Shown here one piece after another: positions 4,497-61,274 of a DNA stretch of 64,000 nucleotides. Source of the stretch: Cyanophora paradoxa CCMP329 (Eukaryota; Plantae; Glaucophyta). The position numbers were made by a program, and so were the translations under genes. Numbering within the stretch: the stretch's first letter is position 1; every line of letters begins with the position of its first letter. The stretch spans positions 1 to 64,000 of the forward strand of contig QPMI01000260.1 of NCBI GenBank assembly GCA_004431415.1. Reading direction: 5' to 3'. The notes beneath the pieces were generated by a model. That model worked only from the letters and a program-made list of their open reading frames with translations, had not been told where the DNA came from and made no database searches.

Positions 4497-4645
4497 CTGC
4501 ACGGCACGGCCGGCAATGCGGCGCGGCTATGGCAGGCGTCGCTGCGCGTGGGCGCACCATTCGGCTCACAACGGCTCCGTTTGTGAGCTGTACCCCAAGC
4601 AAAAAAAGCATAGAAGCTAGCTAGCGCTATAGCTATATAGCTATA

Positions 4646-4840
4646 GGCCGAAATTCGATCCAGCTGGTTCTAGTTTTTTAGCAATAGGACACGAAATTTG
4701 GGCTCGTGCCTAGGATTACAATTCACCGCTGGTGCTGTTTTCTCTTTCAGCTTCGTTTCAAATATACGTACTATTACGTAGGGTGTTTCTTCGTCGACTG
4801 TCTCATGATGAAATCTGCTAGTCATGATCAAAAAGCTAGC
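4646..4840 (+). repeat. 195-bp exact copy of 12416-12610 (H2A.X-GOGAT intergenic region)
   Basis: Base-by-base identity from GGCCGAAATTCGATCC to AAAAGCTAGC. Confidence 0.95.
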
Positions 4841-4852
4841 TCAAAGGGAGCA

Positions 4853-4938
4853 TAGAAGCCGGCGTAGTACCACGCCAGCATGCATCGCAAGAATGCCTCC
4901 TGTTGGCCGCGCGCCGCTTCCGCAGCTCCAAACACGTC
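4853..4938 (-). pseudogene. 86-bp copy of an SMN exon fragment (YG-box, MLAWYYAGF), inverted relative to the gene
   Basis: Reverse complement of 35796-35881 with 2 mismatches. Confidence 0.92.
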
Positions 4939-4944
4939 AGCTGC

Positions 4945-5154
4945 ACGGGCCTCTGCTTGACGTAACTTCTAGCATTTGGTCACATACTGAAATTGCAAGT
5001 CCGGGCTACAAGTGTGGGATGTACACTCAGTGACTGCGGCCGCCGCAGCCGCGGGCCCAGCCCACCAGCGAGTGTGGCCAGCCGGGCCCTGGGTGGCCCT
5101 CCAAGGAGAGTAAGGCCATGCAAAATTGGACTGGGAAAACAGAAAGGTATAGGT
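4945..5154 (-). repeat. 210-bp inverted copy of 33518-33727 (region downstream of SERF, including a dispersed repeat R1 copy)
   Basis: Reverse-complement identity along the full 210 bp. Confidence 0.93.
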
Positions 5155-5600
5155 AGAGCTACGATTACGACCCAGAACCCCGCAACCAGAATTACGATAG
5201 GCCTTGAATTACGACCCAGAATTACGATAGGCCTTGGCTAGAGCTACGTATATACGATTACGACCGATTGCGATTACGATCGGAATCAGGGTTGCGATTA
5301 CGATCGGAATCAGGGTTGCGATTACGATCGGAATCAGAGTTACTAAGTTACTAAGTTAACGTTAACGTTGCGATTACGACGTCCAACTTTCGTCCAACTT
5401 TCGTCCAACTTTCGTCCAATCCGCTACGGCACGGGCGTGGACGCGAAGCGCCTGCTCGGCTCGTAGCTAGGCTCGGCTCCCATCCCCTTTTTTCCATCAG
5501 GGCACCAGTCCCTGCGGGTTACGCTCTATCCCTAACAGCACGGGTACAGTTAAAGCGCTGTAGGTAGGAGGTCCGGCGCGCCCGTAGCGTAGAAAGAGCA
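5128..5600 (+). mobile_element. Non-autonomous internal-deletion derivative ('ghost') of the Fanzor2 element at 47766-49319
   Basis: 5128-5419 matches the reverse complement of 49003-49319, apart from an 8-bp insertion and fewer 11-mer repeats. 5419-5600 is identical to the reverse complement of 47766-47947 (last codons, stop and 134 nt downstream). Confidence 0.92.
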
Positions 5601-7540: not shown

Positions 7541-7686
7541 TGGTGGGCTAGCGCTGGGCCCGCGGCGCCGGCTACGGCGGCCGCAGTGTACATTCCCACA
7601 CTTGTAGCCCGGACCTGCGTCTTAAGTATGTGTCCAAATGCGTGTATACATTCCACGGTTTGAATTCGTGTACATGTCCAAATGCT
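7541..7686 (+). repeat. Dispersed repeat R1 (partial copy), preceded by a local duplication of about 90 bp at 7341-7505
   Basis: Contains GGTGGGCT…GGGCCCGCGG…GTACAT(T)CCCACACTTGTAGCCCGGAC…GTCCAAATGC, shared with the 9100, 20888, 33541 and 4971 copies. Confidence 0.85.
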
Positions 7687-9099: not shown

Positions 9100-9354
9100 G
9101 TCCAAATTTGCATGGCCTTACTCTCCTTGTCATTTGGCGATATTATTGCATGAATTGTTTTGAGACGACCTCCGGATCCGGGCCCCACTGCCAAGAGGCG
9201 CGGGGGAGGAGCATTACTCCCCTTAAGCTTAGGGGGTCACGCAGGGCCCCGCTGCCCAGCTTGCTGGTGGGCTGGGCCCGCGGCGACGGCGGCTGCAGTA
9301 CATCCCACACTTGTAGTACATCCGCAGTGCGTTTTTAATACGTGTCCAAATGCT
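9100..9354 (+). repeat. Dispersed repeat R1 (long copy)
   Basis: Closely similar to 20888-21100; its 5' and 3' parts are shared with 33541-33701. Confidence 0.88.
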
Positions 9355-12286: not shown

Positions 12287-12980
12287 TCTTTGTCCTCCGA
12301 TTCCCGTTGATCGACCAATCTGCATCCTCGCCCTTGCTAGCATTGGTTTCGCAACGAGCAGATTTCATTCCATAGCAACACGCACACACTCTCGATTTTG
12401 AAGTTGCAGAGAATCGGCCGAAATTCGATCCAGCTGGTTCTAGTTTTTTAGCAATAGGACACGAAATTTGGGCTCGTGCCTAGGATTACAATTCACCGCT
12501 GGTGCTGTTTTCTCTTTCAGCTTCGTTTCAAATATACGTACTATTACGTAGGGTGTTTCTTCGTCGACTGTCTCATGATGAAATCTGCTAGTCATGATCA
12601 AAAAGCTAGCAGACGTCGTGTCTCGCCCGGGGATGGTTTGCGAATACATCTGGGAGAATTTGGTACTTTTTCGTCGGGCGCGCGGCGGCGCGGGGGCCCG
12701 GCGAAGCCTGGGCAACTAGCGAATTCGAACTTCGAAGCACGCGCACACAGCCGCGCCGCGAACATCGGAAGGTGTCAGACAGTCTCAGACTCTGTCAGTG
12801 AATGCGGATGAGGTCACATATGCGGCGATATGTCGCGCGGCCGCGGCGCAAGCCGCGCGCGAGCGCTAGCGTTATAGCGTGCGGAAATCAATTAAATCTG
12901 CCGGGGTACCCCACTTCCAGATTCCGGCTCATTATACGGGTCGGTGCGGGAAGCGGCGCGGCGCTACCCGCACGTTCGTG

Positions 12981-15900: not shown

Positions 15901-18900
15901 CAGCTCGAGGAGCTCAAGCCCATTATTCCCCCGATGATGGCCTGCGGCGCCGTGCACCACGCCCTCATCAAGGTGATTGCTTTGCCTAAGAGCCCCACTC
16001 TCTTGAAGCTGACGCTCAAGTCCGCAATCAGGCCGGTCTCCGTAACTTCGCATCCATTGTCCTTGAGACCGGGCAGTGCTGGTCGACTCATCACTTCGCA
16101 TGCCTTGTTGGCTATGGCGCGTCGGCCATCTGTCCCTACATGGCCCTGTCTTCCGTCCGCCAGTGGCGCGCCGACCCGAAGACCGAGACCCTCATGAAGC
16201 GTGGCAAGATCAAGGCTTGCACTGCTGAGGAGGCGCAGGCGAATTTCAAGCACGCCATCGAGGCGGGCCTCCTGAAGATCCTCTCCAAGATCGGCATCTC
16301 GCTGCTCTCGTCGTACCTCGGCGCTCAGATTTTCGAGTGCTTCGGCCTCGGCAAGGACGCCATTGACATGTGCTTCACGGGCACGTACTCCCGCATTGGT
16401 GGCCTCAGCCTCGAGGACACTGCCCGTGAGGTACGCACCTTTCGCCAACCGCCGGGATCTCTTGTAACCCTCTGGCCGCAGATTGTCGCTATTCACCAGC
16501 GCGCCTTCCCCTCGCTCACGTCCAGGAAGCTCGAGAACCTGGGCTTCATTCAGTATCGCCCGAACGGTAAGCAACACTTTGTGGTTCGACGTGCAGCTTC
16601 AATAATAGGAACTGCCGCGTAGCCGAGTACCACCACAACAACCCCGATGTGGCGAAGGCCATCCACAAGATGGTCCGCGACTTCAACCAGGACAACGTCC
16701 AGGCCTACCGGGATCTCGTCCGCTCGCGGTCTGGCCGCCTTTCCGTCCGTCCGCGCGCCGGGCGCTGACGTGACTGGGCAGCCCGACGACGACGCTGCGC
16801 GACCTGATGGACATCAAGTCGGACCGTCAGCCGATCCCCATCGATCAGGTCGAGCCTGCTTCTTCGATCATGCGGCGCTTCTGCACCGGCGGCATGTCCC
16901 TCGGTGCCTTGTCCCGTGAGTGCCACGAGGTGTGCCCCCCACCCCCAACATCCTCCTCCCATCCGCTGTTACTCGCATGTCCTTGAACGCGATTGTGCAG
17001 GTCATCGCGATCGGCATGAACCGCATCGGCGGCAAGTCGAACTCGGGTGAGGGCGGCGAGGATCCGGAGCGCTACAAGGTTCTTGACGATGTCGACGGCG
17101 AGGGCAACAGCAGCTCCGTCTCCTATCTCAAGGGACTGCAGAACGGCGATACGGCCAGCTCTGCGATCAAGCAGATCGCCTCGGGCCGCTTCGGCGTGAC
17201 CCCGGAGTACCTGATGTCGGCCAAGTACCTTGAAATCAAGATTGCGCAGGGTGCCAAGCCCGGCGAGGGCGGCCAGCTGCCCGGCAAGAAGATCTCGTCG
17301 TACATCGCCCAGCTCCGGCGCTCGAAGCCCGGCGTCACTCTCATCTCTCCGCCCCCGCACCACGACATCTACTCGATCGAGGACCTTGCACAGCTCATTT
17401 ATGATCTGCATCAGATCAACGAGGCCGCTAAGGTCTCGGTCAAGCTTGTCTCCGAGATCGGCATCGGCACCGTTGCTGCTGGTGTCGCGAAAGCCAACGC
17501 TGACGTCATCCAGGCGAGTGTCGTCGTCCGCCGACGCTTCCCCCCCCCCCCCCCCCCGCCCCCCCTTCCCCCCGCCTGTGATGACAGGCGCGCAGATCTC
17601 GGGCCATGACGGTGGCACTGGTGCCTCGCCAATTTCGTCAATCAAGCACGCCGGCGGCCCCTGGGAGATGGGTCTCTCGGAGGTGCAGCGCGTGCTGCTT
17701 GAGAACGGCCTTCGCGATCGCGTGGTGCTCCGTGTCGATGGCGGATTCAAGACCGGCAATGATGTCCTTGTCGGTGCCCTGATGGGCGGTGACGAGTACG
17801 GCTTCGGCTCGATCGCCATGATCGCCACAGGCTGCATCATGGCACGCGTCTGCCACACAAACAACTGCCCCGTCGGCGTTGCTTCCCAGCGCGAGGACCT
17901 CCGTCAGCGCTTCCCCGGCGTCCCCGGGGACATCGTGAACTTCTTCATGGTCCGCATATGTTTCTTCCAAATGCTGCTTATTTCCTGCCCAAGCGCCCGC
18001 CCAGGCCGTCGCGGAGGAGACTCGCGAGCTGCTTGCCTCGATGGGCTACCGCAGCCTCGACGAAGGTGTGCAAATTTTCGCCACCCCCTGTGCCGCACCT
18101 TGTCCGATGTGCATCTAACCCCGCTTGCAGTCATTGGGCGCGTGGATCTTCTCAAGCCGCGCGACGGGTTGCGTCTGGCCAAGACCGACAGCGTGTCGCT
18201 CGACTATCTGCTGTCGACCCCCGTGCCCGCCGACCGCTCCTGGGTCAAGCAGCCTGAGACGGCCCACTCAAATGGCCCGGTCCTTGACGACGAGATCCTC
18301 GCCGACCAGGAGATCAAGACAGCCATCGAGTCGCATGGCACCGTCAACAAGACCATCAAGGTGCCGCCTCCGACCAGCGGCGCCATCGCGTGGGCTGTAC
18401 CCCCTTGACATGCACCGTAGATTACCAACGTGGACCGCTCGGTTGGTGCACGCGTGTCGGGCCAGATCGCTGTTCGCTATGGCGACCGTGGCTTCAAGGG
18501 CAAGCTTAACCTCAACTTCGTCGGCGCGGCTGGCCAGTCCTTTGGTGCCTTCATCGTTGATGGCATGCGCATGCGCATCGAGGGCGAGTGCAACGATTAC
18601 GTTGGCAAGGGCATGAACGGTGGCGAGATCATCGTTGTCCCGCCTTCAGGCTCGTCCATCAGCCCCTCGGAGTCTGTCATTGTGGGCAACACCTGCCTGT
18701 ACGGCTCGACGGGTGGGCGCATGTTTGCCTACGGCCGCGCAGGAGAGCGTTTCGGAGTCCGCAACTCGCTCGGCACGGCCGTTGTGGAGGGCACTGGTGA
18801 CCACTGCTGCGAGTACATGACTGGCGGCACCATAGTTGTTCTCGGCCCCGTGGGCCGCAACGTTGGCGCTGGCATGACTGGTGGCCTCGCCTATTTCCTC

Positions 18901-20887: not shown

Positions 20888-21100
20888 GTTTGGCGATATT
20901 ATTGCATGAATTGTTTTGAGACGACCTCCGGGCCCCACTGCCACGAGGCGCGGGGGAGGAGCATTACTCCCCTCAAGCTTAGGGGGTCACGCAGCTCCGC
21001 TGCCCAGCTTGCTGGTGGGCTGGGCCTGCGGCTGCTGAGACCGCAGTGTACATCCCACACTTGAGCCCGGATTTGCATTTTTAGTACGTGTCCAAATGCT
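20888..21100 (+). repeat. Dispersed repeat R1, preceded by GGACGTC/TTACGAT short repeats (20670-20810)
   Basis: High similarity to 9133-9354. Confidence 0.88.
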
Positions 21101-33467: not shown

Positions 33468-33540
33468 GTGAGAAGCATCGCCCAGCAACGCATCCAGTCC
33501 GTGTGCTAGTGGAACGCACCTATACCTTTCTGTTTTCCCA

Positions 33541-33701
33541 GTCCAATTTTGCATGGCCTTACTCTCCTTGGAGGGCCACCCAGGGCCCGGCTGGCCACAC
33601 TCGCTGGTGGGCTGGGCCCGCGGCTGCGGCGGCCGCAGTCACTGAGTGTACATCCCACACTTGTAGCCCGGACTTGCAATTTCAGTATGTGACCAAATGC
33701 T
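33541..33701 (+). repeat. Dispersed repeat R1 (short variant)
   Basis: GTCCAATTTTGCATGGCCTTACTCTCCTTG … GTACATCCCACACTTGTAGCCCGG … CCAAATGCT. Confidence 0.88.
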
Positions 33702-42211: not shown

Positions 42212-42401
42212 AGCTGGGGCCTGCACGCTACCGCATGCAACGCGCGTGTAGAAGGCCTCGCTACCTCGGGGGCTCCATCACCGATTCACGTACCCCTTGC
42301 AAAAACAAAAAGAAAGTCTCGCCTCGCCGCCCCGCTACAGATCATAAGCCTCGCTCAACCGCCAGCCGGTGAAGGACCAGCACAGGTCGCAGCCGACCGC
42401 C

Positions 42402-42915
42402 ATGCTCCTCGAGCCAGACTCCTTCCTGAACGAGCTTACAAAGCTATTCACAAAGTGCAAGACAGTTGGGAGCGTGTACATTACAGTAAAGCGATGTGCG
42501 TCTCGCGCGCCGCGCCTGGCACCGCGACGGTGGGCAAGGTCTCACGACGAAGCCGCAGTCACCGGCCCGCCGAGCGGTCGCAAGGATAAGCAAGACAAGA
42601 AAGGCGCGGTTGCGGGCGAGGAAAAGTGCTTGCTGCGGGCAACCGATGGCAAGCGCATTAAGCTCTCCACCGTGGTGCGCTCGATCGCAAGTGCCGCGAT
42701 GTGTGAATCCCCCGCGCGACCGCATTGTGGACCAGGTGCCCCGCGCGTGAGCTGACGCTGGATTCGCACAGATCGCGCACAAGGACCACGTGCGCTTCCA
42801 GATGGCATTCGCTACGATCCTCAAGGTTCAAATGGACGCGCTGAAGAAGAAGGAGAAGAATGTCAAGAAGGCACCGGCGCCCGTAAAGAAGAAGGCTGCG
42901 GAGCCCTCCGCTTAG
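42402..42915 (+). CDS. SRP14: Signal recognition particle 14 kDa protein
   Basis: Motifs MLLEPDSFLNELTKLF…GSVYITVKR, CLLRATDGK…KLSTV and MDALKKKEK. Confidence 0.93.
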
Positions 42916-43186
42916 CTATTCTGCCCCCCTGCCTTCACTGACCCGCTTGACTGCCCCTAGGCCTGCATTTTGACGAAACACGCGCTGTCAGCTAGCTGTT
43001 TGACTGACAGTGTTCACGGAAGACATCGGGGTAGTACTGCTCATGCCATGACTCGATGATGATGCCCCCGCGGCCGCGCGCGCAATCCGCAATCTAAAAT
43101 TTTGCCGCAATCTTCAGTAAGCTTGAAATTTTGCCGCAATCTATAGCTATTTTGTCGAGGCACGCGAGGACAACTAGCTAGCTATT

Positions 43187-45094
43187 TCAACTGGATACAG
43201 CACCCTTCTTCCGGGCAGCACTTTCCGCGTGACTTTTCTTGGCCTTCTCGAGGAGCGGCAACAGCTGTTTTTTCTCTGCCAAGATTTTGAGAAACTCGCA
43301 CACGAACCTGGCGCGCGGAGGAGAGCAAAATTCAGAGAGCGACGTGGTGCGGTGGGCGCGGGCACGTCCGCACGGGATGTAGTTGTGGCGGCGGCGCATG
43401 TTCTCTATCTGCAGGGCGGTGAGCGAGGGGGCGCAGAAAAGCACAGGCTGGGACCGCGCCTTCCAGGCCTTGTACTTCTCGTCCTCGGCCTGGACGGTGG
43501 CGAGCAGCTGCCCCGCCCGGTCCTCCAGCTGCAGCATCTGCGACTGCACCTGCGCTCCGCTCGCGCTCTCTCGCCGCCGGCGTCCGGGGCGGGCCGCGCA
43601 CCTCGTCGCCCCCGATGCGCTCGATCTCAGTAACCTGCGCGTGCACCTCCCCGCTGGTGTCCGGCCCGCCCTCCGGCTCTGAGTCCCCCGCTGATGAGAT
43701 GGTGCGAGACGGCGGGAAAGCGAACGGGACGCGCCGACGCAGGCGGCGGGATCGACCGGGAGGCCAAGGGCCATGAGGCGGCGGGCGGCAGCGGCGCGAA
43801 GGGTGAGGACGCGCTTGAGCTCCTGCTGGGCGGCGTCCTTGCGGTTCCTTGTACGGGGGGTCATCCTTGCTACGAGCTACTGCATCAGGGGCGTGGCAGA
43901 CCTCACGAGGGCTAGTAGATTGAAGCGGATTTCGCTCGACGCGTATCTGCCCCGCGTCATGCCACGCTCCGCCCTATTGCGGCGCCCCGCGCACCGTTCG
44001 ATGCGGGCCTGAATCACCGGCGCCACCTTTTGCAGCCAGTCGTCCTTCGTGCAGGGGCCGAGATCGATTGGGCCAGGCTTCAGCCCATCGAGCTCGTACA
44101 GAACCCCGTTCACGGGCACGTAGCTGGCGCGAGTTCGGGAGCTGCCCCGTGGGGCGAGGCGCGAGGTCGCACCTAATGAAGTGGTACACGTCGTCATCCT
44201 TCGTCGCTTTCTTGTCCTCCTCGATGACGAACGGCTCAGGGCTGCCAGCGCATGAGAGGTCCCTCGCGGACGCGCAGCGAGCTGAACGCAGTACCGAGCG
44301 AAGCTATTGTGAACAGTGCGAATCGTCTCGCTGTTGCTAATAGCCAGGCCCTTCATCTGTGGCAGCGATGCTCAGCTGCGATCCCCGAAGGGCGGGCGGC
44401 TTGGTCCCTCGGGCTTGCCTCGGGGTCGAACTCTTTGGTGAAGTTTCTGAACTCGTTAAGCTCACTCCCTAGCTCGATTTCTTGGCAGTTCATCACGATA
44501 GACAAAAGGGCTTGCGTCGCGCAGGCGTTGTTGATGATCTGCGCTTCCGTCACTTAAGGCCTACCCGAGCCCAACGAGTCCCCTGGACCTGGTTAGCGAA
44601 AAACAAGCCCTCGCGCGGCTCCTTCACGACTGGTCTGTCGTCCTTCTCGTGCCGCCACTGCGCGGCATCTGAGGAAACTGCCGGCACACGGAAGGCGGCG
44701 AATGGCTCGGACCTTGAACAGAAAGCAGAGCCTGCGCGCAGAGGAGCATGAGCAGCCAACGTCAGCTACAGCTCGCGCCGCGCAGAAAGCGCGAGCAAGC
44801 TCCGCTCACCCGAACACCGGCCTGCGGGGTCGATTCATCAGCAAGCGGCACGTACGCGGCTCGGGCGGTTCGCACTGGAGCTCGCGCATCATGTCCGCGT
44901 CCAGGCTGTAGATTTCCTCCATCTGCACGCCACGAACGCCGATTCGCGCCAGTAGCTCCGTGAAGACACCGGGGTCGGACTCGATGGTGCACCTGGCGCG
45001 ATGGCTCGCTAAACGACGCCCAGCGGCGTTCACGCGCGTCTATAAGAGGGGCGCTTGCGATTGCCGTATTGCACCAGTTCATGGAATTCGCCAT
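43187..45094 (-). CDS. UCHL5: Ubiquitin C-terminal hydrolase UCH37/UCHL5
   Basis: Motifs [51 protein letters not shown] and [11 protein letters not shown]. Confidence 0.94.
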
Positions 45095-45202
45095 CCTCTC
45101 GCTCTCTTCGCTCTTTTGTAACGTCTGACTCGCCGTCGACAGATCGACTCGTTTGTTCGACTCGACGTCGGACTCGACGACTCGTCGGACTCGACGACTC
45201 GT

Positions 45203-45844
45203 TAGGGATGTGCCTTGGTACCCCTCCGGTCCTTGGCAAGGTGACCTTGACCGCCCTCTGTCCTTGGCAAGGTTCCCTTAAGGTCCTGCCATACAAACTT
45301 TCCGCCATACAAATCGTGTTATGAAATCAAAATCTACTTGACCTAAGCTGCAAAACTGCATCTTACACAGCTCGTTTTTTTTACCGGTCGACCCAACACG
45401 GTCAAAAATCGGTTAAGGCGAAATCGCTCCTCGGGTATTTGGAATTCCCCGGCTTTAGCTAGTGCAATCTACCCGCTAGCTTGACGGCTACAAGCTGCTG
45501 CGAGGAGACTAGCCGTTCTGCGGCGGGTGAAAAGTTATCGCGATCGCCGGCTACCCTTGCCCATACAACGGGCATGTCGAGTCGATTAGGAAAAAAAACG
45601 AGCTGTGTTACACTCGAGCTAAGCAAGTCGGTAACGTCGATTTGTTCAAATAGAGCTGTTTTCCACCAATCCGGTCATAGTTGCACCCGCACGGGTACGC
45701 GGTGTAGGGGGTCTCCCATACAAAAGTTTTGTATGGCCGGACCTTGCCCTTGCCTTGAGCCACCTTGTTGCCTTGGCAAGGTAACCTTAAACGCCCGAAA
45801 ACGCACCTTAAACGCAAGGTGGTTCCTTGCAAGGGACATCCCTA
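45203..45844. mobile_element. Non-autonomous hAT-type MITE (642 bp)
   Basis: TIRs TAGGGATGTGCCTTG / TAGGGATGTCCCTTG (14/15 match). Perfect 8-bp TSD CGACTCGT at 45195-45202 and 45845-45852. Subterminal CCTTG/CAAGG and CCATACAAA repeats. Confidence 0.92.
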
Positions 45845-45879
45845 CGACTCGTCCACGCGGGGGTAGAGGAGTTTCGATA

Positions 45880-47598
45880 ATGGAAGCGCTGGGCGCTGAG
45901 TACGCAGCGCCGTCTCCGGAACCGCCGAGCGCATCTGCACAGGCCGCACAGCAGTTTTCCATCCCGATCAAGAGGATCAATGCGAAGACGGACCTCGCGC
46001 GCTGGCAGCGCTCCAAAGCGTACCGCTATTTCATTGAATTCGTGCTCGGCTGCAATGAGAGCGTGAAGCGCAAGTTCGTCTCCGACCCGTGCCACATCTC
46101 GCCGGTCCTCGCCCTCGCCGCGCGTGGAAGCAGCGCTGAGCTCGTAGGCAGGTCGTTCAGAGCATTCTCGATACGCTCGGCGCGCTCGACGCCTGGATTG
46201 ACGAGACGCCGCCGGAGACAAACCCGCAGCGGTACGGCAACAAGGCGTTCCGTGTCTGGCTCAAGCGTGTCGTCGAGGTGCGCTCTGTCTGTCGTTTTCG
46301 CAGCACCTGCATGACCGGCGCTCTTCGCAGAACATGGTTCAGCACATGCAGTCCATCCTGCCCGAGTCGTTGCGTGGGGCTGCCGCGGAGCTCGCGCCGT
46401 ACTGGGCGGACTCGTTCGGCAACATGGTGCGCATCGACTACGGGACTGGCCACGAGGCGGCGTTCGTCGCGTGGATGGCCTGCCTGCACCGCCTGGGCGC
46501 ACTCAAAGATGAGGACCGCCAGGCCGCTGTCCTGCGCGTCTTCGCGCGGTGCGGCGCCCCGCACGCGCCGGCGCGGCGCGCGGTTGAGGGGCATGCAGGT
46601 ACCTACGCTTGATGCGGCGGCTGCAGACGACGTACTGGCTGGAGCCGGCGGGCTCGCACGGCGTCTGGGGACTGGACGACTACCACTTCCTCCCCTTCCT
46701 GTGGGGCGCGGCGCAGATGGTGGACCACGCGCGGCTGAAGCCGAGCGCGGTGACGCGGGCGGAGGCGGTGGAGGCGATGGCTGGGGAGTGTCTTTACTTC
46801 GAGGGCGTCGCCTTCATCCGCCGCGTCAAGCGGGGCCACTTCGGCGAGCACTCGCCCATCCTCCACGACATCTCCGCCGTGCCCCTCTGGTCCAAGGCCC
46901 GCCCCGCCGCCCCCTTCCCCCTCCCCGCCCGACGCCCCGCAGGTCAACACGGGCCTCATCAAGATGTACCACGTGGAGGTGCCCGGGCCGGCGGCCGCGG
47001 CGCCTTGGTCTGACGCGGGCGACAGGTGCTCGGCAAGTTCCCCGTCATCCAGCACTTCCTCTTCGGGTCGCTGCTGCCCTTCGAGGAGGACCCTGCTTCC
47101 CAGGAGCACGCGCACGCCGGGGCGCACGCGCACCATCCCCCGCACGCCTTCCACGTCCACGCCCCGCACGCCCACCCGCTTCCCCGCACCCACGACCCCC
47201 ACCCCTCTTCCTCCGCGCCCCGCGCTCACACCCCGGCCAACCCTGCATCTTCCCCCGCCGCCTCACATTCCGGCTGCCCCGCCGCCTGCCCGGCGGAACC
47301 CCCCGCTCCAGAGCGCGCACTCGTTCCGCCGCACGCCGCCCCTGCGCATGCACCCTCGCCAGCCCACTCCTCCACCCCGTCCGATCCTCCTGGCCCTGCC
47401 CCTTCGAGCGTGCCGCCATCCTCCTCGGCCTCCGGAGAGCCGCCTAGAGCTGCGGGTCTCCCTCTCGCCCCCAGCCTGCTCTCATCCACCCCATCACACC
47501 CCCACTCGGGCGCTCCGCTGCTCGCCCCGGCTTCTGATGAAACTCCCAGCACAGCCCCTTTCCCAGCCGCGGCGGCCGCCTGCAGCTCGAGTAGTTGA
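45880..47598 (+). CDS. PTPA: PP2A activator (PTPA/RRD)
   Basis: Motifs QRYGNKAFR, SFGNMVRIDYGTGHEAAF, YWLEPAGSHGVWGLDDYHFLPFLWG and EVLGKFPVIQHFLFGSLL. Confidence 0.95.
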
Positions 47599-47745
47599 TC
47601 TCCCTCGATCGCGAGCGCCACCTTGACGTTGTTTACTTCGAAAATTCGGATCCTGATCGCGAGTGCCCCAGCGCCGCCTCAGGCCTCCTGACGCGATGCG
47701 GCGCCACCCTTCGAATTCGAGAGCGGGGGGGGGCCCGGGGGATCT

Positions 47746-47899
47746 GTATGGTTAGGATATCATCATGCTCTTTCTACGCTACGGGCGCGCCGGACCTCCT
47801 ACCTACAGCGCTTTAACTGTACCCGTGCTGTTAGGGATAGAGCGTAACCCGCAGGGACTGGTGCCCTGATGGAAAAAAGGGGATGGGAGCCGAGCCTAG
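47746..47899 (-). ncRNA. Putative Fanzor omegaRNA scaffold (copy 1); predicted guide from the flank TGATGATATCCTAACCATAC
   Basis: 134 nt between the Fanzor stop and the conserved element end at 47766; identical in the second copy. Confidence 0.62.
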
Positions 47900-49319
47900 C
47901 TACGAGCCGAGCAGGCGCTTCGCGTCCACGCCCGTGCCGTAGCGGATGAAGATGCCCCTGCGAGAGGCCCCCTCGCTTTGAGGGCGGGGGCTAGGAGGCG
48001 AGCTCTGGTCAAGTGGCTAGGCCGTGTCGGGACTAGGCGGGGGGAGCAGCGATTGTGTATAGGCGTGCATAGACACAACACGCACCGCGCGGCGCCGCCG
48101 TCGCGGTCCGCCCGGAAGCCGCACCCGGGGCGGCACTCGAAGACCCTCTTCGAGCCGAGCCCGTAGTTGATCTTGCCGCACACCCCGCACGTCTTCGAGG
48201 TCCAGGCCTCGCAGACGAGCTGGAGCGTGCACGGCGGGTCCTCGTCCTTGGGGTGCCGCCGGACGGCGTGCTGCAGGAGCTGGCGGAACCTGCGCAAAAT
48301 AAGCATCAAGACCGCGTGGCAGAGGGAGTCGAAACGCAAGACCAGCGTACTCGTAGTGGCGGCAGTCGAGAGCCTGACGCGCCACCCACGGGAGCATCGC
48401 CCGCCCCTTGCGGGCGACCTGCAGGGGAAAGTGAGCGGAATTCCCGGGGCGGGCGCGCCGACAGAGCTCGCCGACCATCTGGCTGGTGCGGAACTCCGGC
48501 GCGATGACCATCCGAGCGTGCCCCGCGAGAAAACTACGTCGCGCGCCGTGCGTGGTTACGAAGAGTACATGATTCAGTGATCGGGGACGCGCACCGAACC
48601 CAGCGCCGAATGACCTCCGTCGCCTGGTTGCGCATGCGCGCGTAGCGCCGACGCCCCAGCGCCCGGAGGTGCCGGCGCGTGCCGTGGCGCGCTGCGCAAA
48701 GGGCTCAGCCGCCAAGGGCGCCAAAAAGACCGAAGGGCGTGGGCGCACGGTAGGTCCGCTCTGGCTTGCCGTAGCAGAGGCTGGGGCAGGGGCAGGCGGG
48801 CCGCGGCTCGGCGCGCAAGCCTCTTCTGAAGGTCGGGGGGGCCGACGGCGGCGGCTGCTCGGCGGCGTGCAGGCCCCTCTCACCAGGCGCCAGATTCTTC
48901 GCCTGTAGCTCCAGCTTCTTCGCCCAGTAGGCCGCCTCCCGCCTCGCCCGATCGGCATCGTGCTGCCGCATGCGTTCCTCCCTGCGCTCCTTCGCCGCCT
49001 CGTTGGACGAAAGTTGGACGAAAGTTGGACGAAAGTTGGACGAAAGTTGGACGAAAGTTGGACGAAAGTTGGACGTCGTAATCGCAACGTTAACGTTAAC
49101 TTAGTAACTTAGTAACTCTGATTCCGATCGTAATCGCAACCCTGATTCCGATCGTAATCGCAACCCTGATTCCGATCGTAATCGCAATCGGTCGTAATCG
49201 TAGCTCTAGCCAAGGCCTATCGTAATTCTGGGTCGTAATTCAAGGCCTATCGTAATTCTGGTTGCGGGGTTCTGGGTCGTAATCGTAGCTCTACCTATAC
49301 CTTTCTGTTTTCCCAGTCC
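47766..49319 (-). mobile_element. Fanzor2-carrying element (no transposase visible)
   Basis: Ends defined by the second copy at 5128-5600. The upstream part consists of ATTACGAT-type repeats and seven GTTGGACG(AAA) 11-mers. Confidence 0.82.
47900..48971 (-). CDS. Fanzor2 / IS607-TnpB-like nuclease, C-terminal half only (235 aa spliced, 5 introns)
   Basis: Introns at 48748-48692, 48594-48534, 48475-48419, 48350-48290 and 48085-47958 are all GT-AG and keep the frame. They give …RMRNQATEVIRRWVRFLAGHARMVIAPEFRTSQMV…HYEFRQLLQH…VCEAWTSKTCGVCG…LGSKRVFECRPGCGFRADRDGGAARGIF. No RuvC-I (DPG) segment is seen. Confidence 0.88.
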
Positions 49320-50099
49320 GCACGCGGGGGTCCGCCGATCATGGCATGATCATTCCTTCCGGGTCACCCGGGTAGCATTCCTTTCCGAAGTTCCCTCATA
49401 TGCATGAGCCTCGAGCTCGGAGTCATGATCCGATGATCATGATCAGTCACTGATCCGATGATCACGAGTGGCCCATGGCCAGTGGATCCGGATCCGATGA
49501 TCTAGATCTCGGAGGCTCATGGCGGGCTCGCCGACTCGGCGAGTCGGGCCCCCGGGCCCTCGGGGAATTCGAACGCCGCTGTGATCGATTATCCGTTCAA
49601 CGGTTGAACTCCGGAACTTAGTAGTGGTACTACGGTAATTCAAATTAAAACGATTAACTAAGTGACGCCCGGCCGCCGGGCCGCGGCCGCCGGGCCGCGC
49701 GCGGGGCGTAGATTCAATGATTTCCGAAGTTCAACTTGACCATGCTGGTCCATGCACACCGTGGCACTGTACGTGACTCTGTGACAATGCTTCAAGGCTT
49801 TTATGATCCGAGGCCCTGGGCTACTAGGCCCGAGGCTAATTATAAGTTCCCGGCCCGGCCCGGCGGGTCGAGGCCCGGGGAGCGTATCCCCCCCCCCCCC
49901 CCCCCCCCCTCCCCCCGCATCCGATGATCGCGTATCCGACGGTCTCGTCAAAATGCCATCATGGCATGATCCGATCATGCCATGATGATGCAAATTTTTA
50001 TTCGAGGCCTTCGAGGCTTCTGTATGTACACGCGGCGCGCCATCGTTCAAGCAGGCCCAGGTCACTGAGAGTTAAAAGCGGGAAGCTCGACGCGTACGG

Positions 50100-53000
50100 A
50101 CGCTCAGGATGCGGGCGCGGCATAGAAGCGCTGGACCGCGAAGGCCGGGGGCGGGCGGGGCCGGCGGGGAGCCCCGGCGGGGCAGGGAGCCGCGCAGCTG
50201 CGAGGGAGGCGGCGAGGGGTGGCTGGGGGGGCGGGGCGGCGGCGGCGAGGGGCCGGAGGGCCGGCTCGGTTTCGGCCCTTTTGAGACGTCAGTAAGTATT
50301 AAACGAAATCACGTTAGCGCTGAAAACAAACTGAAGATGAAGGCAGTGGAAGGGGTACGAACCAGGCGCGGAGGGCGTCGGAGGCGTGGCGGGTTGCGGT
50401 GCGGGCGTGGAGCAGGAGGGTCTCCCGTAGCTCGGCCCCCGTCTCGCGCTGCAGGCGGGCCACCTCCTCCCCCAGCGCCCCCTCGAACGCGTCCAGCGCC
50501 CGCGTCGCCTCCACCCACGCCTGGCCCCGCGTCACTCCCGCCCCGCCCGACTCGCACGCCGCTCCGCGCCTGCCACGCACCGCGCCTTCCTTGCAGAGGT
50601 CCAGCTCCACGGTCCGCGCCCGGCGCGCCGCGCGCTCCTGCAGCTGCGGGGCGGGTGGGGGCGGCGGCGGGGCGGGGCAGGGACGGCGGTGCGGACGGAG
50701 GCCTCGGAGGCCTGCGGGGCGGGTGAGGGGGGCGGCGAAGCGAGGCGGGCGCGGCGGGGCGGACGAAGGCGTCGGCGAGGAGGTCCGTCACCGCGTACTG
50801 GCCCGTCGACGAAATCTGGCCGAGCGAAGACGGCCGGCTCAGCCTCCGCGCGGCCGGCGGCGGAGCGGCGGGCGCACCCTCGTGAGCCGATACCGGTCGA
50901 GGTCGACGCGGGCGGCCGCCCTGTTCGCCGCCAGGCGCAGCGCCTCGTGCTCTTCCTGCGCGTGCTGCCGGCCCCCGCGCGTCGGCCTGCACCGGCGTGC
51001 GAGCGCAGCGCAGCGCCGCGGCGGGCACCAGCGCGCTGCGACCCAGGAGGGCGTAGTCGTAGAACTGCGCCTTAGCTCCGTCTCCACCGCCGCCGCCTGC
51101 AGACCGGTCGCGGCGGCAAGCTGCGAGCGGGTCCGGCGCCGGCGGGGCGCACGAGGGCGGCGTCGAGCTGCCCGCAGCGCCGGTAGGCCGACGCGAGGAC
51201 GGCGAGGCCGCGCGCCGTCGCAGCGGCCGGCGTAAAGGCGGCCTCGGGGGCCGAGGGCCAGGCCTCAAGGGCGGCGGCGACCTCCTCTTCGGCGGCCGCC
51301 ACGGCGACCCGCGCCTGCGCCAGCGTCCGCAGCGCCCCGAGCGCCTGCGTTGCCTCAGCCGCCCCGCCCCCGGGCGCCACCGGGCGGGCGGGGCGGACGG
51401 TGAGGGAGGCAGACTCGAGGCCCCGCACGTAGTCCAACGCCGGTGTCGTCGGGCCAGCCGCACCGAACCCCCGGCCCCGCCCCCGCGCCTGGCTCTGGTC
51501 CGGGTTGTTCACCACCCTGCCCAGCGCGGGCCACATTGTAAGGGGGCGGGCGCGCGGCTCTCAGACGAAAGTCCCTCACCGATCGATCTTGGCGGCGAGG
51601 GAGGAGCGCGGCTTGACGCTCTGGGGAGGGAGGGGGATGGAGGGCTCGGGCGCGCTGCAGGAGGCCCTCCAGGCGGGGAGGCGCACGGTGTCCATGTGCT
51701 GCTGGGTGAGGAACGCGTGCAGCTCCCGCGTGTACCGCAGCCGCGGGTGCGACGCCACCCGCAGCAGGAACCTGGCCCCCGCCCGCCCCGCCCCGTCAGC
51801 GAGGGGCGGACGCCCTGGGGCCCGCGCCCGAGCCCAGCCGGCGTGCCGCTCGAGGAGGAATCGTTCCTGTGAGAGCCTGTCAAAGCTCTCCGGGGCTGGC
51901 AGGTTCCAAGAGACATCAGGGGTTGAGCACCTCTTCAGCAACCATCCCGCCGCTCCGACCCCAAGCTGCGCCGCGTGATCATGAGTTCGAGCCAAACTAC
52001 TTGCAAAAGGTTTCATGCACCCGAACGCAGCGAGTTGTCGGGGAAAGGGATTAGGATGAACGGATACGTCGCCCTATCCGGAGCGGGAGGGGAAAAGGTC
52101 AATGTCGGCGGCTCTGGGGCCTCTGGCAGGCGAAGGCCGGCAGCCGTTCACCGCAGCTGGTCGTTGAGCACGGCGAACTCCTGCCTCGAGGTGTCAGGGA
52201 GCACGCAAACCTACATGCGCATGCACGACGCTGCAGCAATTCCGGGCGGCCCGGATGGCACCTGGAAGCTCCTCCGAACGGAGAACGTCGCGGCCGAGGC
52301 CGAACCGCCGTACGGGGAGAAAAGATAGGGAGGCGGGCCTTGCTGCACGACAAAGGCAGGCAGATTTGTCTGCGCATGCTGTCACGCAAGCCGCGCTGTT
52401 GCGTGCATATCCCCACTCGGATGCACCAAGCACTGCACTTCGAAGATCGAAGCGGCTTTGCGGCCAGTGCCGATCGAAAGGGGCCCGACCACCCGCAGCT
52501 GTACCGGCGGTCAGACTCTGAGAGCTTCGAAGGCGGACCGGGGGCATTAACCTCCAGCCGGTATGGCTGCTCCCGCTCCTGCGCGTGGTCTGATATCGAT
52601 GGCGAACCGTGGCCTCGTGGCGGGATCTCGATAGCGCACGAAAACATTGGGGGCCACCGGAGCGAGCTGCATCTGCACTTGGTCTCGCATTGAGCCCAGC
52701 CCGGACACCACAAACGATTGCGATGGCGCCGGGAAGCTGCCGGCGGGCATTTCGGAGCGGACGAAAGCGCCCGCGGGCGTTTGATACGTGCTTGGGGGGC
52801 TTTCGACAAAGTACGCCGGTGCTCTTTGCGGAGTTGCCCACCTTTGCGCTGACTCCGACTCTGTTCGAAATGCCAAATGAATCAGGGGCCAGGTGGATCA
52901 GCTTGGGTGCCGGGCGGACCAAATACGGGGGCCGGGCGTAGAGCTTCGGCGGTGCGTTCGCGCTCGAACGATGCGCTGCGCACGTTTTGCTCCGCTTCTG

Positions 53001-59204: not shown

Positions 59205-59862
59205 ACCTCTTTGCCGCGCGCAGTGCTTCTCTCTTGTATGTTGTACAATTCGACGAGTTCTGAGAGATATCGATCTAGAAGTTCGGCCATGTACACGTGC
59301 AACGTTAACCGTACGCGTACGCGCAGCGCGCGCACTGCAGCTGCGGCACGCGCCGGCTGAGCGCCTCGTACGCGCGTACGAGGCTGCGGGAACCATTATT
59401 AAGTGAACTGATACTAGTGCACATTGATAACACTGGCATGCTAGCCGCGGACAACGCAGGCTAGAAGCGGCGGTGCTAACTACGGGGGCGAGAAGCCGCG
59501 GACGACGCAGGCAGGGCCCTCTGAAGGGGGGCGCGCAACTTCCCCCTGGGGGTTCCTACAAACTACGATGGGGACGAGGGGGGGCCTGCCGCGGCGGGGC
59601 CCGCAGGTCTAGGCGAAGACGGAGGTAGCTAGGCCGAGGGAGGAAGCACCAAGAACGGACTCCGGTGCCGGGGCACCGGCCGCCGCCGGGGCATGCGCAG
59701 CTGCAGCCGGCGCCGGAGAGGGGAGCGGCCCGAGCGGGGCGAGCCGCACGGGCTTCATCCTCCGCCCCGCGTCCACGCCGGAGAAGAAGCGCAGGGCGAT
59801 GTTCTTGCGGAAAGAAGCATATTAGAGGGGCCGCCGGGCCAAGTATCGTGGGAATCGCTATC

Positions 59863-60430: not shown

Positions 60431-61274
60431 GCACGTTTGGCGAGCTGTGGCGAATTTAATTTTTCCGGGAAGGTCGTGCCACTTCGTCTGGAAGATGTGC
60501 GTGAAGACACAAGCTTTGTATTTTTCATGGCGAACAAAAGCACAGATGAGAGCTGGGGATGAGCGTGAATTCAGGTAAATTAACTATAAACCTCGAGGGG
60601 CGGGGAGAGGGGCGGGGGAGAGGAGGGGCGTACTAGTGCGCCCCAGCCGGTGCCGCTTCGTTGACGATCTAGACAGTTGTACCCCCCTCAACCCACCAGT
60701 CTGGCACCAGACTGGCACCAGTCTGGCACCAGACCGGCAGAATCCGGCACCAGTCACGCCCACGCGCCACGAGCTTTCTAGATCTCCATGTGCACATTGA
60801 TAACACTGGCATGCTAGCCGCGGACAACGCAGGCTAGAAGCGGCGGTGCTAACTACGGGGGCGAGAAGCCGCGGACGACGCAGGCAGGGCCCTCTGAAGG
60901 GGGGCGCGCAACTTCCCCCTGGGGGTTCCTACAAACTACGATGGGGACGAGGGGGGGGGGCCTGCCGCGGCGGGGCCCGCAGGTCTAGGCGAAGACGGAG
61001 GAGCTAGGCCGGGCTCGAGGGAGGAAGCACCAAGAGCGTCGCATAGCGCGGAGCGCGTCAGCAGTTGCATACAGGCTGCAGACAGAACGCCTACAGCTAG
61101 AACGCCGTGGCAGTCGATGCAGCTCCCAGCTGCCTTCATAGGCGTTTCTGCAGGCCCCAACTTTCTTCGCGGCGCGCTCCCCGCGTGCGCATGCTGATTT
61201 CGTGCGCAGGAACGCAAGATCACCAACTAGAGCAGAAGACAAGACAAGACTAGTGCAAGCTCCCCAGCCGAGCA

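Follow-up and report, generated by a model that had tools for sequence, protein, structure and literature searches.

What does a short, intron-rich gene with the C-terminal motifs of a Fanzor represent in the genome of the glaucophyte alga Cyanophora paradoxa CCMP329? The gene lies at positions 47766-49319 of the first 64,000 nucleotides (nt) of contig QPMI01000260.1 (GenBank assembly GCA_004431415.1), the stretch referred to below as the window. Fanzors, the eukaryotic TnpB proteins, occur across eukaryotes, algae included. Very probably the locus holds a member of a Fanzor transposon family of this alga, a copy that is non-autonomous and has suffered an internal deletion; the evidence comes from the spliced reading frame, from a nearly identical full-length paralog and from the distribution of truncated copies.

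Gene model and splicing

The model of the gene is based on the three minus-strand frames and on public contigs placed on 47000-50200, which come from runs X1, X4 and X5 (three studies, labelled 'RNA?') and from the DNA-like run X15. It comprises the following elements:

48971-47900, minus strand: truncated Fanzor gene, six exons and five introns, 708-nt coding sequence
48749..48971, minus strand: exon 1, from the annotated ATG, a low-complexity lineage-specific insert
48692..48748, minus strand: intron 1, 57 nt (GTGCGC..GCGCAG), joint 48691>48749 in X1, X4 and X5
48595..48691, minus strand: exon 2, start of the long RuvC helix (RHGTRRHLRALGRRRYARMRNQATEVIRRWV)
48534..48594, minus strand: intron 2, 61 nt (GTGCGC..ACGTAG), joint 48533>48595 in X1, X4 and X5
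48476..48533, minus strand: exon 3, FLAGHARMVIAPEFRTSQM, with Pro120 at the canonical RuvC-II Glu position
48419..48475, minus strand: intron 3, 57 nt (GTCGGC..CTGCAG), joint 48414>48472 (cut +4) in X1, X4 and X5
48351..48418, minus strand: exon 4, VARKGRAMLPWVARQALDCRHY followed by a split Glu codon, aligning with the conserved WSHYRFRQ block of the relatives
48290..48350, minus strand: intron 4, 61 nt (GTACGC..GCGCAG), joint 48287>48349 (cut +2) in X1, X4 and X5, not in X15
48086..48289, minus strand: exon 5, alternative RuvC-II Glu (E176), zinc ribbon (C183/C186/C201/C205) and RuvC-III DRD (D212)
47958..48085, minus strand: intron 5, 128 nt (GTGCGT..TCGCAG), directly after the RuvC-III DRD
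47900..47957, minus strand: exon 6, an Arg codon split over the intron (CG|G), then GIFIRYGTGVDAKRLLGS, stop codon TAG at 47902-47900

All five introns start with GT and end with AG, and the joined exons contain no internal stop, in agreement with the original prediction of one open frame of 235 amino acids (aa). Their translation is exactly the public protein P0154 (tig00001085_g6958.t1, 235 aa), found through a search with exon 5 which led to a cluster with members from the EukProt proteome of Cyanophora paradoxa. The gene had been described as hidden by its introns, which is not the case, since the public annotation already has the exact model. The five junctions are all present as CT..AC joints in contigs of X1, X4 and X5, that of intron 5 as 47956>48085 in X4 with near-identical joints of paralogs in X1, X4 and X5. 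No junction occurs in X15, though its contigs cover the introns. X1, X4 and X5 are regarded as RNA because their contigs carry GT-AG joints, show the end of the transcript of the neighbouring gene PTPA at ~47656 and leave intergenic DNA uncovered. The Fanzor fragment of the window is transcribed and is spliced as predicted.

Exon 1 is without homology outside Cyanophora, and contigs are continuous over 48749-49002. Its frame is open upstream to 49100, across a tandem array of an 11-mer and further, up to a stop codon at 49103-49101. An additional intron predicted at 48884 was rejected, as contigs pass straight across it.

The encoded protein and its full-length paralog

The motifs named in the original prediction are all found in P0154 where they had been placed: PEFRTSQMV at 119 (across intron 3), HYEFRQLL at 147 (across intron 4), EAWTSKTC at 176, CGVC at 183, CRPGC at 201 and DRD at 210. 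The exons were searched one by one, and the whole-protein searches were made with P0154. The Pfam profile PF07282 (Cas12f1-like TNB, the OrfB zinc ribbon) matches the protein with 42.6 bits against a cut-off of 26.3, and exon 5 alone with 37.3 bits (E=3e-9), also above the Pfam threshold; NCBIfam gives sub-threshold TnpB matches only, and the short exons searched singly against PDB give no match. Mimivirus L79 (the Fanzor2 protein ApmFz2, 9b0l) is ranked first by phmmer against PDB. Homology to other TnpB and Fanzor proteins, as delimited by BLASTP of the paralog described below with at least 30 relatives, starts in exon 2.

The catalytic triad of ApmFz2 consists of D324, E467 and D501 (PMC11832414). 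In the phmmer alignment E176 of P0154 corresponds to E467, and D212 to D501; judged from this alignment, E176 and D212 are the second and third catalytic residues, the first being absent. A rearranged canonical Glu position is the defining site of Fanzors and pro-Fanzors (PMC10711439). In P0154 the alternative RuvC-II Glu is present (E176, six residues, then CGVC), with Pro120 where ordinary TnpB has Glu, and the pattern of PxF combined with ExxTSK, in which the Glu of the second motif was proposed to serve instead, is nearly invariant among the 30 closest relatives. The strict published Fanzor regular expression fails on P0154 by spacing alone, the second zinc pair being CxxxC. The RD motif that follows the zinc finger contains the RuvC-III Asp (D212).

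An alignment of P0154 with its closest full-length relatives (30 sequences) shows that the protein retains every invariant column, namely F, E, TS, both Cys pairs and RD, and most of the nearly invariant ones, including Pro and Phe of the LLPxFxTS block. It departs at three nearly invariant columns: His33 (helix block), Lys112 and Asn149 (ARNIL block). The last departure is a trait of the family, because Asn149 is also absent from the full-length paralog (Ser there, Gly in the window copy). A profile built from this alignment finds 9b0l in PDB with E=4e-33, the next match having 3.7e-19 and Cas12m, Cas12f and TnpB lying far behind, and Fanzor1 chains are absent from the matches at E<0.01. The AlphaFold 2 model of residues 70-235 has a confidence score (pLDDT) of 87, with a helix at residues 8-43, and in Foldseek its top match is again 9b0l, followed by Cas12f, Cas12m and TnpB among the other top matches. 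A fold of half a RuvC domain with a zinc finger is thus present in the model.

The full-length paralog, P0157 (tig00000342_g24202.t1, 1087 aa), belongs to the same 90% cluster as P0154. Its last 235 residues are identical to P0154 at 231 of the 235 positions (98%). It carries VVIDPGV (RuvC-I, D613, with the DPG motif) and a WED-like region aligning with other Fanzor-like proteins, and the distance from its RuvC-I Asp to the Glu is 414 residues. The window copy covers 22% of the full protein. The WED and REC lobes and the RuvC-I Asp (hence DPG) are missing from it, and its first 75 residues are the lineage-specific low-complexity insert, outside homology starting at residue 76 of 235. Since WED, REC and the RuvC-I Asp have been lost, the 235-aa product could not act as an RNA-guided nuclease by itself. 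The main inference made at the outset, a recently mobile family with a non-autonomous derivative at this locus, is supported; the family bears introns and has been amplified recently, and the copy is 5'-truncated.

The intact frame, with its own ATG, all five introns spliced and the C-terminal 166 residues predicted to fold confidently, could also be read as that of a functional exapted mini-protein, either a nuclease-dead regulator binding omegaRNA or a dominant-negative inhibitor of full-length Fanzor. This we consider most improbable: with 98% identity to the full-length paralog, intactness needs no selection, the models of paralogous genes break off at many other points, and the first 75 residues of the product are low-complexity insert. 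The earlier suggestion of a nuclease-dead RNA-binding remnant is unsupported, as the RNA-binding WED and REC parts are those that are missing. The frame is probably intact because the copy is young and not because of selection.

As to the type of Fanzor, sequence, profile and fold each rank ApmFz2 first. Outside Cyanophora, the nearest relatives stand alone as genes encoding HTH_OrfB_IS605, OrfB_IS605 and TNB domains; their contigs are long, intron-less and rich in ORFans, carry Ank/F-box, BTB, RING and RNR genes, and look like those of giant viruses. The family is therein Fanzor2-like, and the evidence leans toward Fanzor2 membership without proving it. The leaning is opposed by the size of P0157 and by its Asp-Glu spacing of 414 against the 120-160 of compact TnpB-like proteins. 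Neither was an IS607-type serine recombinase found: there is none in 20 of the 113 open frames (at least 110 aa, overlapping 38000-59500, i.e. within ~10 kilobases (kb) of the element), nor in the flanks of four virus-like relatives, and residues 1-930 of P0157 give no Resolvase or other domain match. The assignment to the IS607-TnpB/Fanzor2 clade made in the original prediction stands in its sequence, profile, fold and relatives, but not in size and spacing. A homology search with the C-terminal half of P0157, dominated by low-complexity words, gave one weak match.

Cyanophora has a second Fanzor lineage, P0067 (tig00021617_g22932.t1), 48% identical, with DPG present and an Asp-Glu spacing of ~148. 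In its 1839-aa model a compact Fanzor module is fused to UCH (deubiquitinase), zf-CW and HRDC domains; this may be a mis-joined model or the cargo of a giant element.

Truncation, copies and ends of the element

The repeat unit containing the gene is delimited by homology to a second copy in the window, and its parts outside the exons are as follows:

47766..49319, minus strand: whole repeat unit (satellite-rich left part, truncated Fanzor gene, 3' tail)
47766..47899, minus strand: 3' tail after the stop codon, 134 nt, to the sharp 3' boundary; candidate right end and, by position only, candidate omegaRNA scaffold
49002..49075, no strand: perfect tandem array of an 11-mer (GTTGGACGAAA), 6.7 copies, 100% match in Tandem Repeats Finder
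49076..49319, no strand: satellite-rich left part, with a 6-mer, an 8-mer, a 24-mer x3.1 (49114-49187), a 17-mer x3 (49211-49258) and a 27-nt end (49293-49319)
5128..5600, plus strand: second, shorter copy, in which the left satellite part runs straight into the final 182 nt of the tail (100%)

Homology of the window to P0157 stops at 49002, corresponding to P0157 residue 843, and the 11-mer array starts exactly there, which bears out the replacement of the N-terminal part, including the RuvC-I Asp, by the array. The satellite-rich left part is shared with the short copy at 5128-5419, and in another gene model, P0002, the translated 24-mer satellite is fused in frame to a differently truncated Fanzor. 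Self-BLAST of the window gives 100% identity for 47766-47947 against 5600-5419 and 97% for 49036-49319 against 5419-5128. X15 DNA contigs cross the outer junction on each side (47000-47794 and 49290-49875). Where contigs have unrelated flanks, every one of them stops at 47765-47768, and because of this 47766 is taken to be a true boundary of the family.

The summed depth of X15 contigs is approximately single-copy over 48605-48925 and rises stepwise toward the 3' end; at 47749-47962 it is ~400-600x that of a neighbouring single-copy gene, an indication of copy number and not a count, and it is equally high over the arrays. Further Cyanophora gene models of the family are truncated at other points. 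The observations suggest that the tail is present in hundreds of copies, truncated to graded extents at the 5' side. In Chlamydomonas, 5' truncation, internal deletion and 3' overabundance have been described for the Fanzor elements CRe-1 to CRe-3 (PMC3627910). In the Cyanophora family 5' truncation and 3' overabundance are found as well, in the depth gradient and in the variously truncated gene models.

The short copy forms the last two pieces of a ~1-kb mosaic (4643-5600), whose five pieces are copies of other parts of the window: 12413-12610 (99.5%), 35884-35790 (94.7%), 33727-33518 (100%), 49319-49036 (97%) and 47947-47766 (100%). The mosaic could be a result of serial 5' transduction by one-ended copying, of template switching in repair, or of an assembly chimera. 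The 27 nt that form the extreme left end of the element recur alone at 33518-33544, followed by the 183 nt which flank the short copy (5127-4945); this locus, the short copy and the 47766-49319 element share just those 27 nt.

The reading as a deleted family member goes with the following scheme. WED, REC and the RuvC-I Asp have been lost, with the 11-mer array and satellites in their place, the satellites recurring at the left of other truncated copies. The conserved tail (last exon and 134 nt, with its sharp end at 47766) would be a cis-acting right end and, by analogy with TnpB and Fanzor systems, also an omegaRNA scaffold whose guide is read from the flank. Any activity would be supplied in trans by full-length members of the family, which may derive from Fanzor2/TnpB genes of the giant-virus type, 'eukaryotised' by introns and large insertions. 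The position of the tail at the element boundary fits the TnpB/Fanzor rule, and so does the fact that each truncated copy retains it; it is sharply bounded and conserved in the short copy (5419-5600), the two window copies being identical. The omegaRNA proposed originally has position and conservation in its favour, and neither fold stability nor an Rfam match; the tail is a candidate scaffold on those two grounds by analogy, with no independent support. Rfam gives no match in it at E<=1.

Several observations weigh against this reading. The RNA fold of the tail is not more stable than those of shuffled sequences (z=+0.5). The element showed no target-site duplication and neither inverted repeats nor hairpins at its termini, and a partner transposase was not found: inspection by eye revealed neither duplication nor inverted repeat at either copy, DNA folds at both ends are no better than those of shuffles, and the only inverted repeat is an imperfect 16-nt pair around the tail (47769-47784 and 47937-47952; 81%), within chance for the G+C content. 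The most abundant exon-5 transcripts carry a paralog variant (48276 G>T, L154M), for which reason expression of the exact window copy is weakly shown. Finally, in the RNA-like runs X1 and X4 and in the DNA run X15, exon-1 contigs diverge from the window precisely at 49002 and extend 1.3-2 kb further, those of X1 and X4 being identical to it over 48595-49002 and then running through ~1.3 kb absent from the window. A longer version therefore exists, and outside the assembly the junction with the array is thinly confirmed, one X5 contig only (spliced at intron 1) entering the array, by 22 nt.

The longer version is possibly present at this very locus in other isolates. It is accordingly conceivable that the truncation is not fixed, i.e. 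that the locus holds a longer or full-length Fanzor and the 49002 junction is a strain-specific deletion or an assembly collapse. This is suggested by the X15 contig which, at single-copy depth over 48605-48925, exits at 49002 for ~2 kb, X15 having both outer insertion junctions too, and by the like exits of the X1 and X4 contigs, with zero differences over 351 nt. Nevertheless we regard it as unlikely: the X5 contig does enter the array, the array also marks the break-point of the short copy, at 5419, the public gene model is the truncated form, and De Bruijn contigs can lose a branch into a very high-copy array.

A somewhat stronger, though still doubtful, alternative to the Fanzor2-like element is that the family is not of the Fanzor2/IS607 type and the Fanzor is carried by a rolling-circle (Helitron2-like) or another eukaryotic transposon, with one-ended transposition as in CRe-1 to CRe-3. 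The 3' overabundance, graded 5' truncation and internal deletions (as in PMC3627910), the giant protein with a large insert between RuvC-I and RuvC-II, the failure to find a serine recombinase nearby or in the N-terminus of P0157, and the UCH, zf-CW and HRDC fusion in the sister lineage P0067 all agree with such a carrier. Against it stand the end folds, neither of which has a terminal hairpin better than in shuffled controls; the sequence, profile and fold searches, all of which favour ApmFz2 and TnpB and match no Fanzor1 structure; and the closest relatives, stand-alone genes on giant-virus-like contigs.

A different view of the abundant unit (the satellite arrays and a ~190-nt tail) is that of an omegaRNA-end module which spreads by itself, reaching hundreds of sites through one-ended copying and being transcribed beyond its boundary; the probability of this is low. 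If it were true, the copies would form a dispersed repertoire of guides for a few full-length Fanzor nucleases, with the longer copy at 47766-49319 an intermediate in the series, and the break-point arrays would take part in the copying itself instead of being a passive satellite.

Surroundings, significance and comparison with known systems

The deleted Fanzor copy lies in the intergenic space downstream of PTPA, whose transcript ends ~110 nt before the right end of the element. The adjoining host stretch (42348-47600) comprises:

42.3-42.8 kb, plus strand: SRP14, host gene beside the insertion
43.2-44.4 kb, minus strand: UCH-L type deubiquitinase, host gene beside the insertion
45.5-47.6 kb, plus strand: PTPA, host gene beside the insertion

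The 20 screened frames yielded host genes alone, those listed and a peptidase M16. The stretches 49330-49520 and 49925-49990 are rich in overlapping CATGATC/GATCATG palindromes, have a DNA depth of ~5x single copy and flank a 29-nt poly-C run (49888-49916); similar poly-C/poly-G runs occur near 17545, 26962, 30533 and 54382. A dispersed repeat of ~130 nt (74-81% identity), unrelated to the Fanzor element, is found at 4971-5105, 7553-7641, 9228-9354, 20978-21100 and 33567-33701. A direct duplication of 250 nt (95.6% identity) links 59417-59657 and 60790-61038.

A literature search returned no paper that connects Fanzor or TnpB to Cyanophora or to glaucophyte genomes, and the Fanzor survey supplements examined have no entry for the Cyanophora family. 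The window copy is a dead-end derivative, ordinary debris of a high-copy family which adds little by itself, its gene model being already public. Its value lies in documenting a Fanzor family in a glaucophyte. This family, nearest to giant-virus Fanzor2 and yet large, intron-rich and very high in copy number, helps to trace the entry and adaptation of these nucleases in eukaryotes, and the full-length 1087-aa gene is a candidate for editor testing.

Three known systems invite comparison. The IS607-family TnpB, or pro-Fanzor (Yoon et al. 2023, PMC10711439), has the same C-terminal motif order, with a DPG RuvC-I (seen in P0157) and the Glu six residues before the zinc finger. It differs in being prokaryotic and intron-less, with 120-160 residues between Asp and Glu, none of which is true of the Cyanophora family, and in having a serine recombinase TnpA as partner (PMC10711439), whereas no such recombinase was found in the frames and flanks screened here.

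CRe-1, CRe-2 and CRe-3 of Chlamydomonas reinhardtii (Bao and Jurka 2013, PMC3627910) are likewise an algal, intron-containing Fanzor family, the copies of which are often 5'-truncated with internal deletions, their 3' ends being intact and over-abundant. Those elements, however, are of the Fanzor1 type; their backbone is that of Helitron2, their termini have hairpins and their target-site duplications vary (PMC3627910), whereas the Cyanophora family is nearest to Fanzor2 and neither hairpin nor duplication was found in it.

The closest resemblance is to ApmFz2 (L79; PDB 9B0L), the best match in sequence, profile and fold, with which the Cyanophora protein has in common the zinc ribbon, the RuvC-III motif DRD and a relocated RuvC-II Glu that precedes the first CxxC by six residues; the closest metagenomic relatives of the Cyanophora family are also giant-virus-like. 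The two differ in that ApmFz2 is compact (520 aa) and intron-less, with GKL at the canonical Glu position, whereas in the Cyanophora family this position is occupied by PxF, the gene has at least five introns, the full-length protein measures 1087 aa and the second zinc pair is CxxxC. The window copy covers only the part matching ApmFz2 residues ~370-509.

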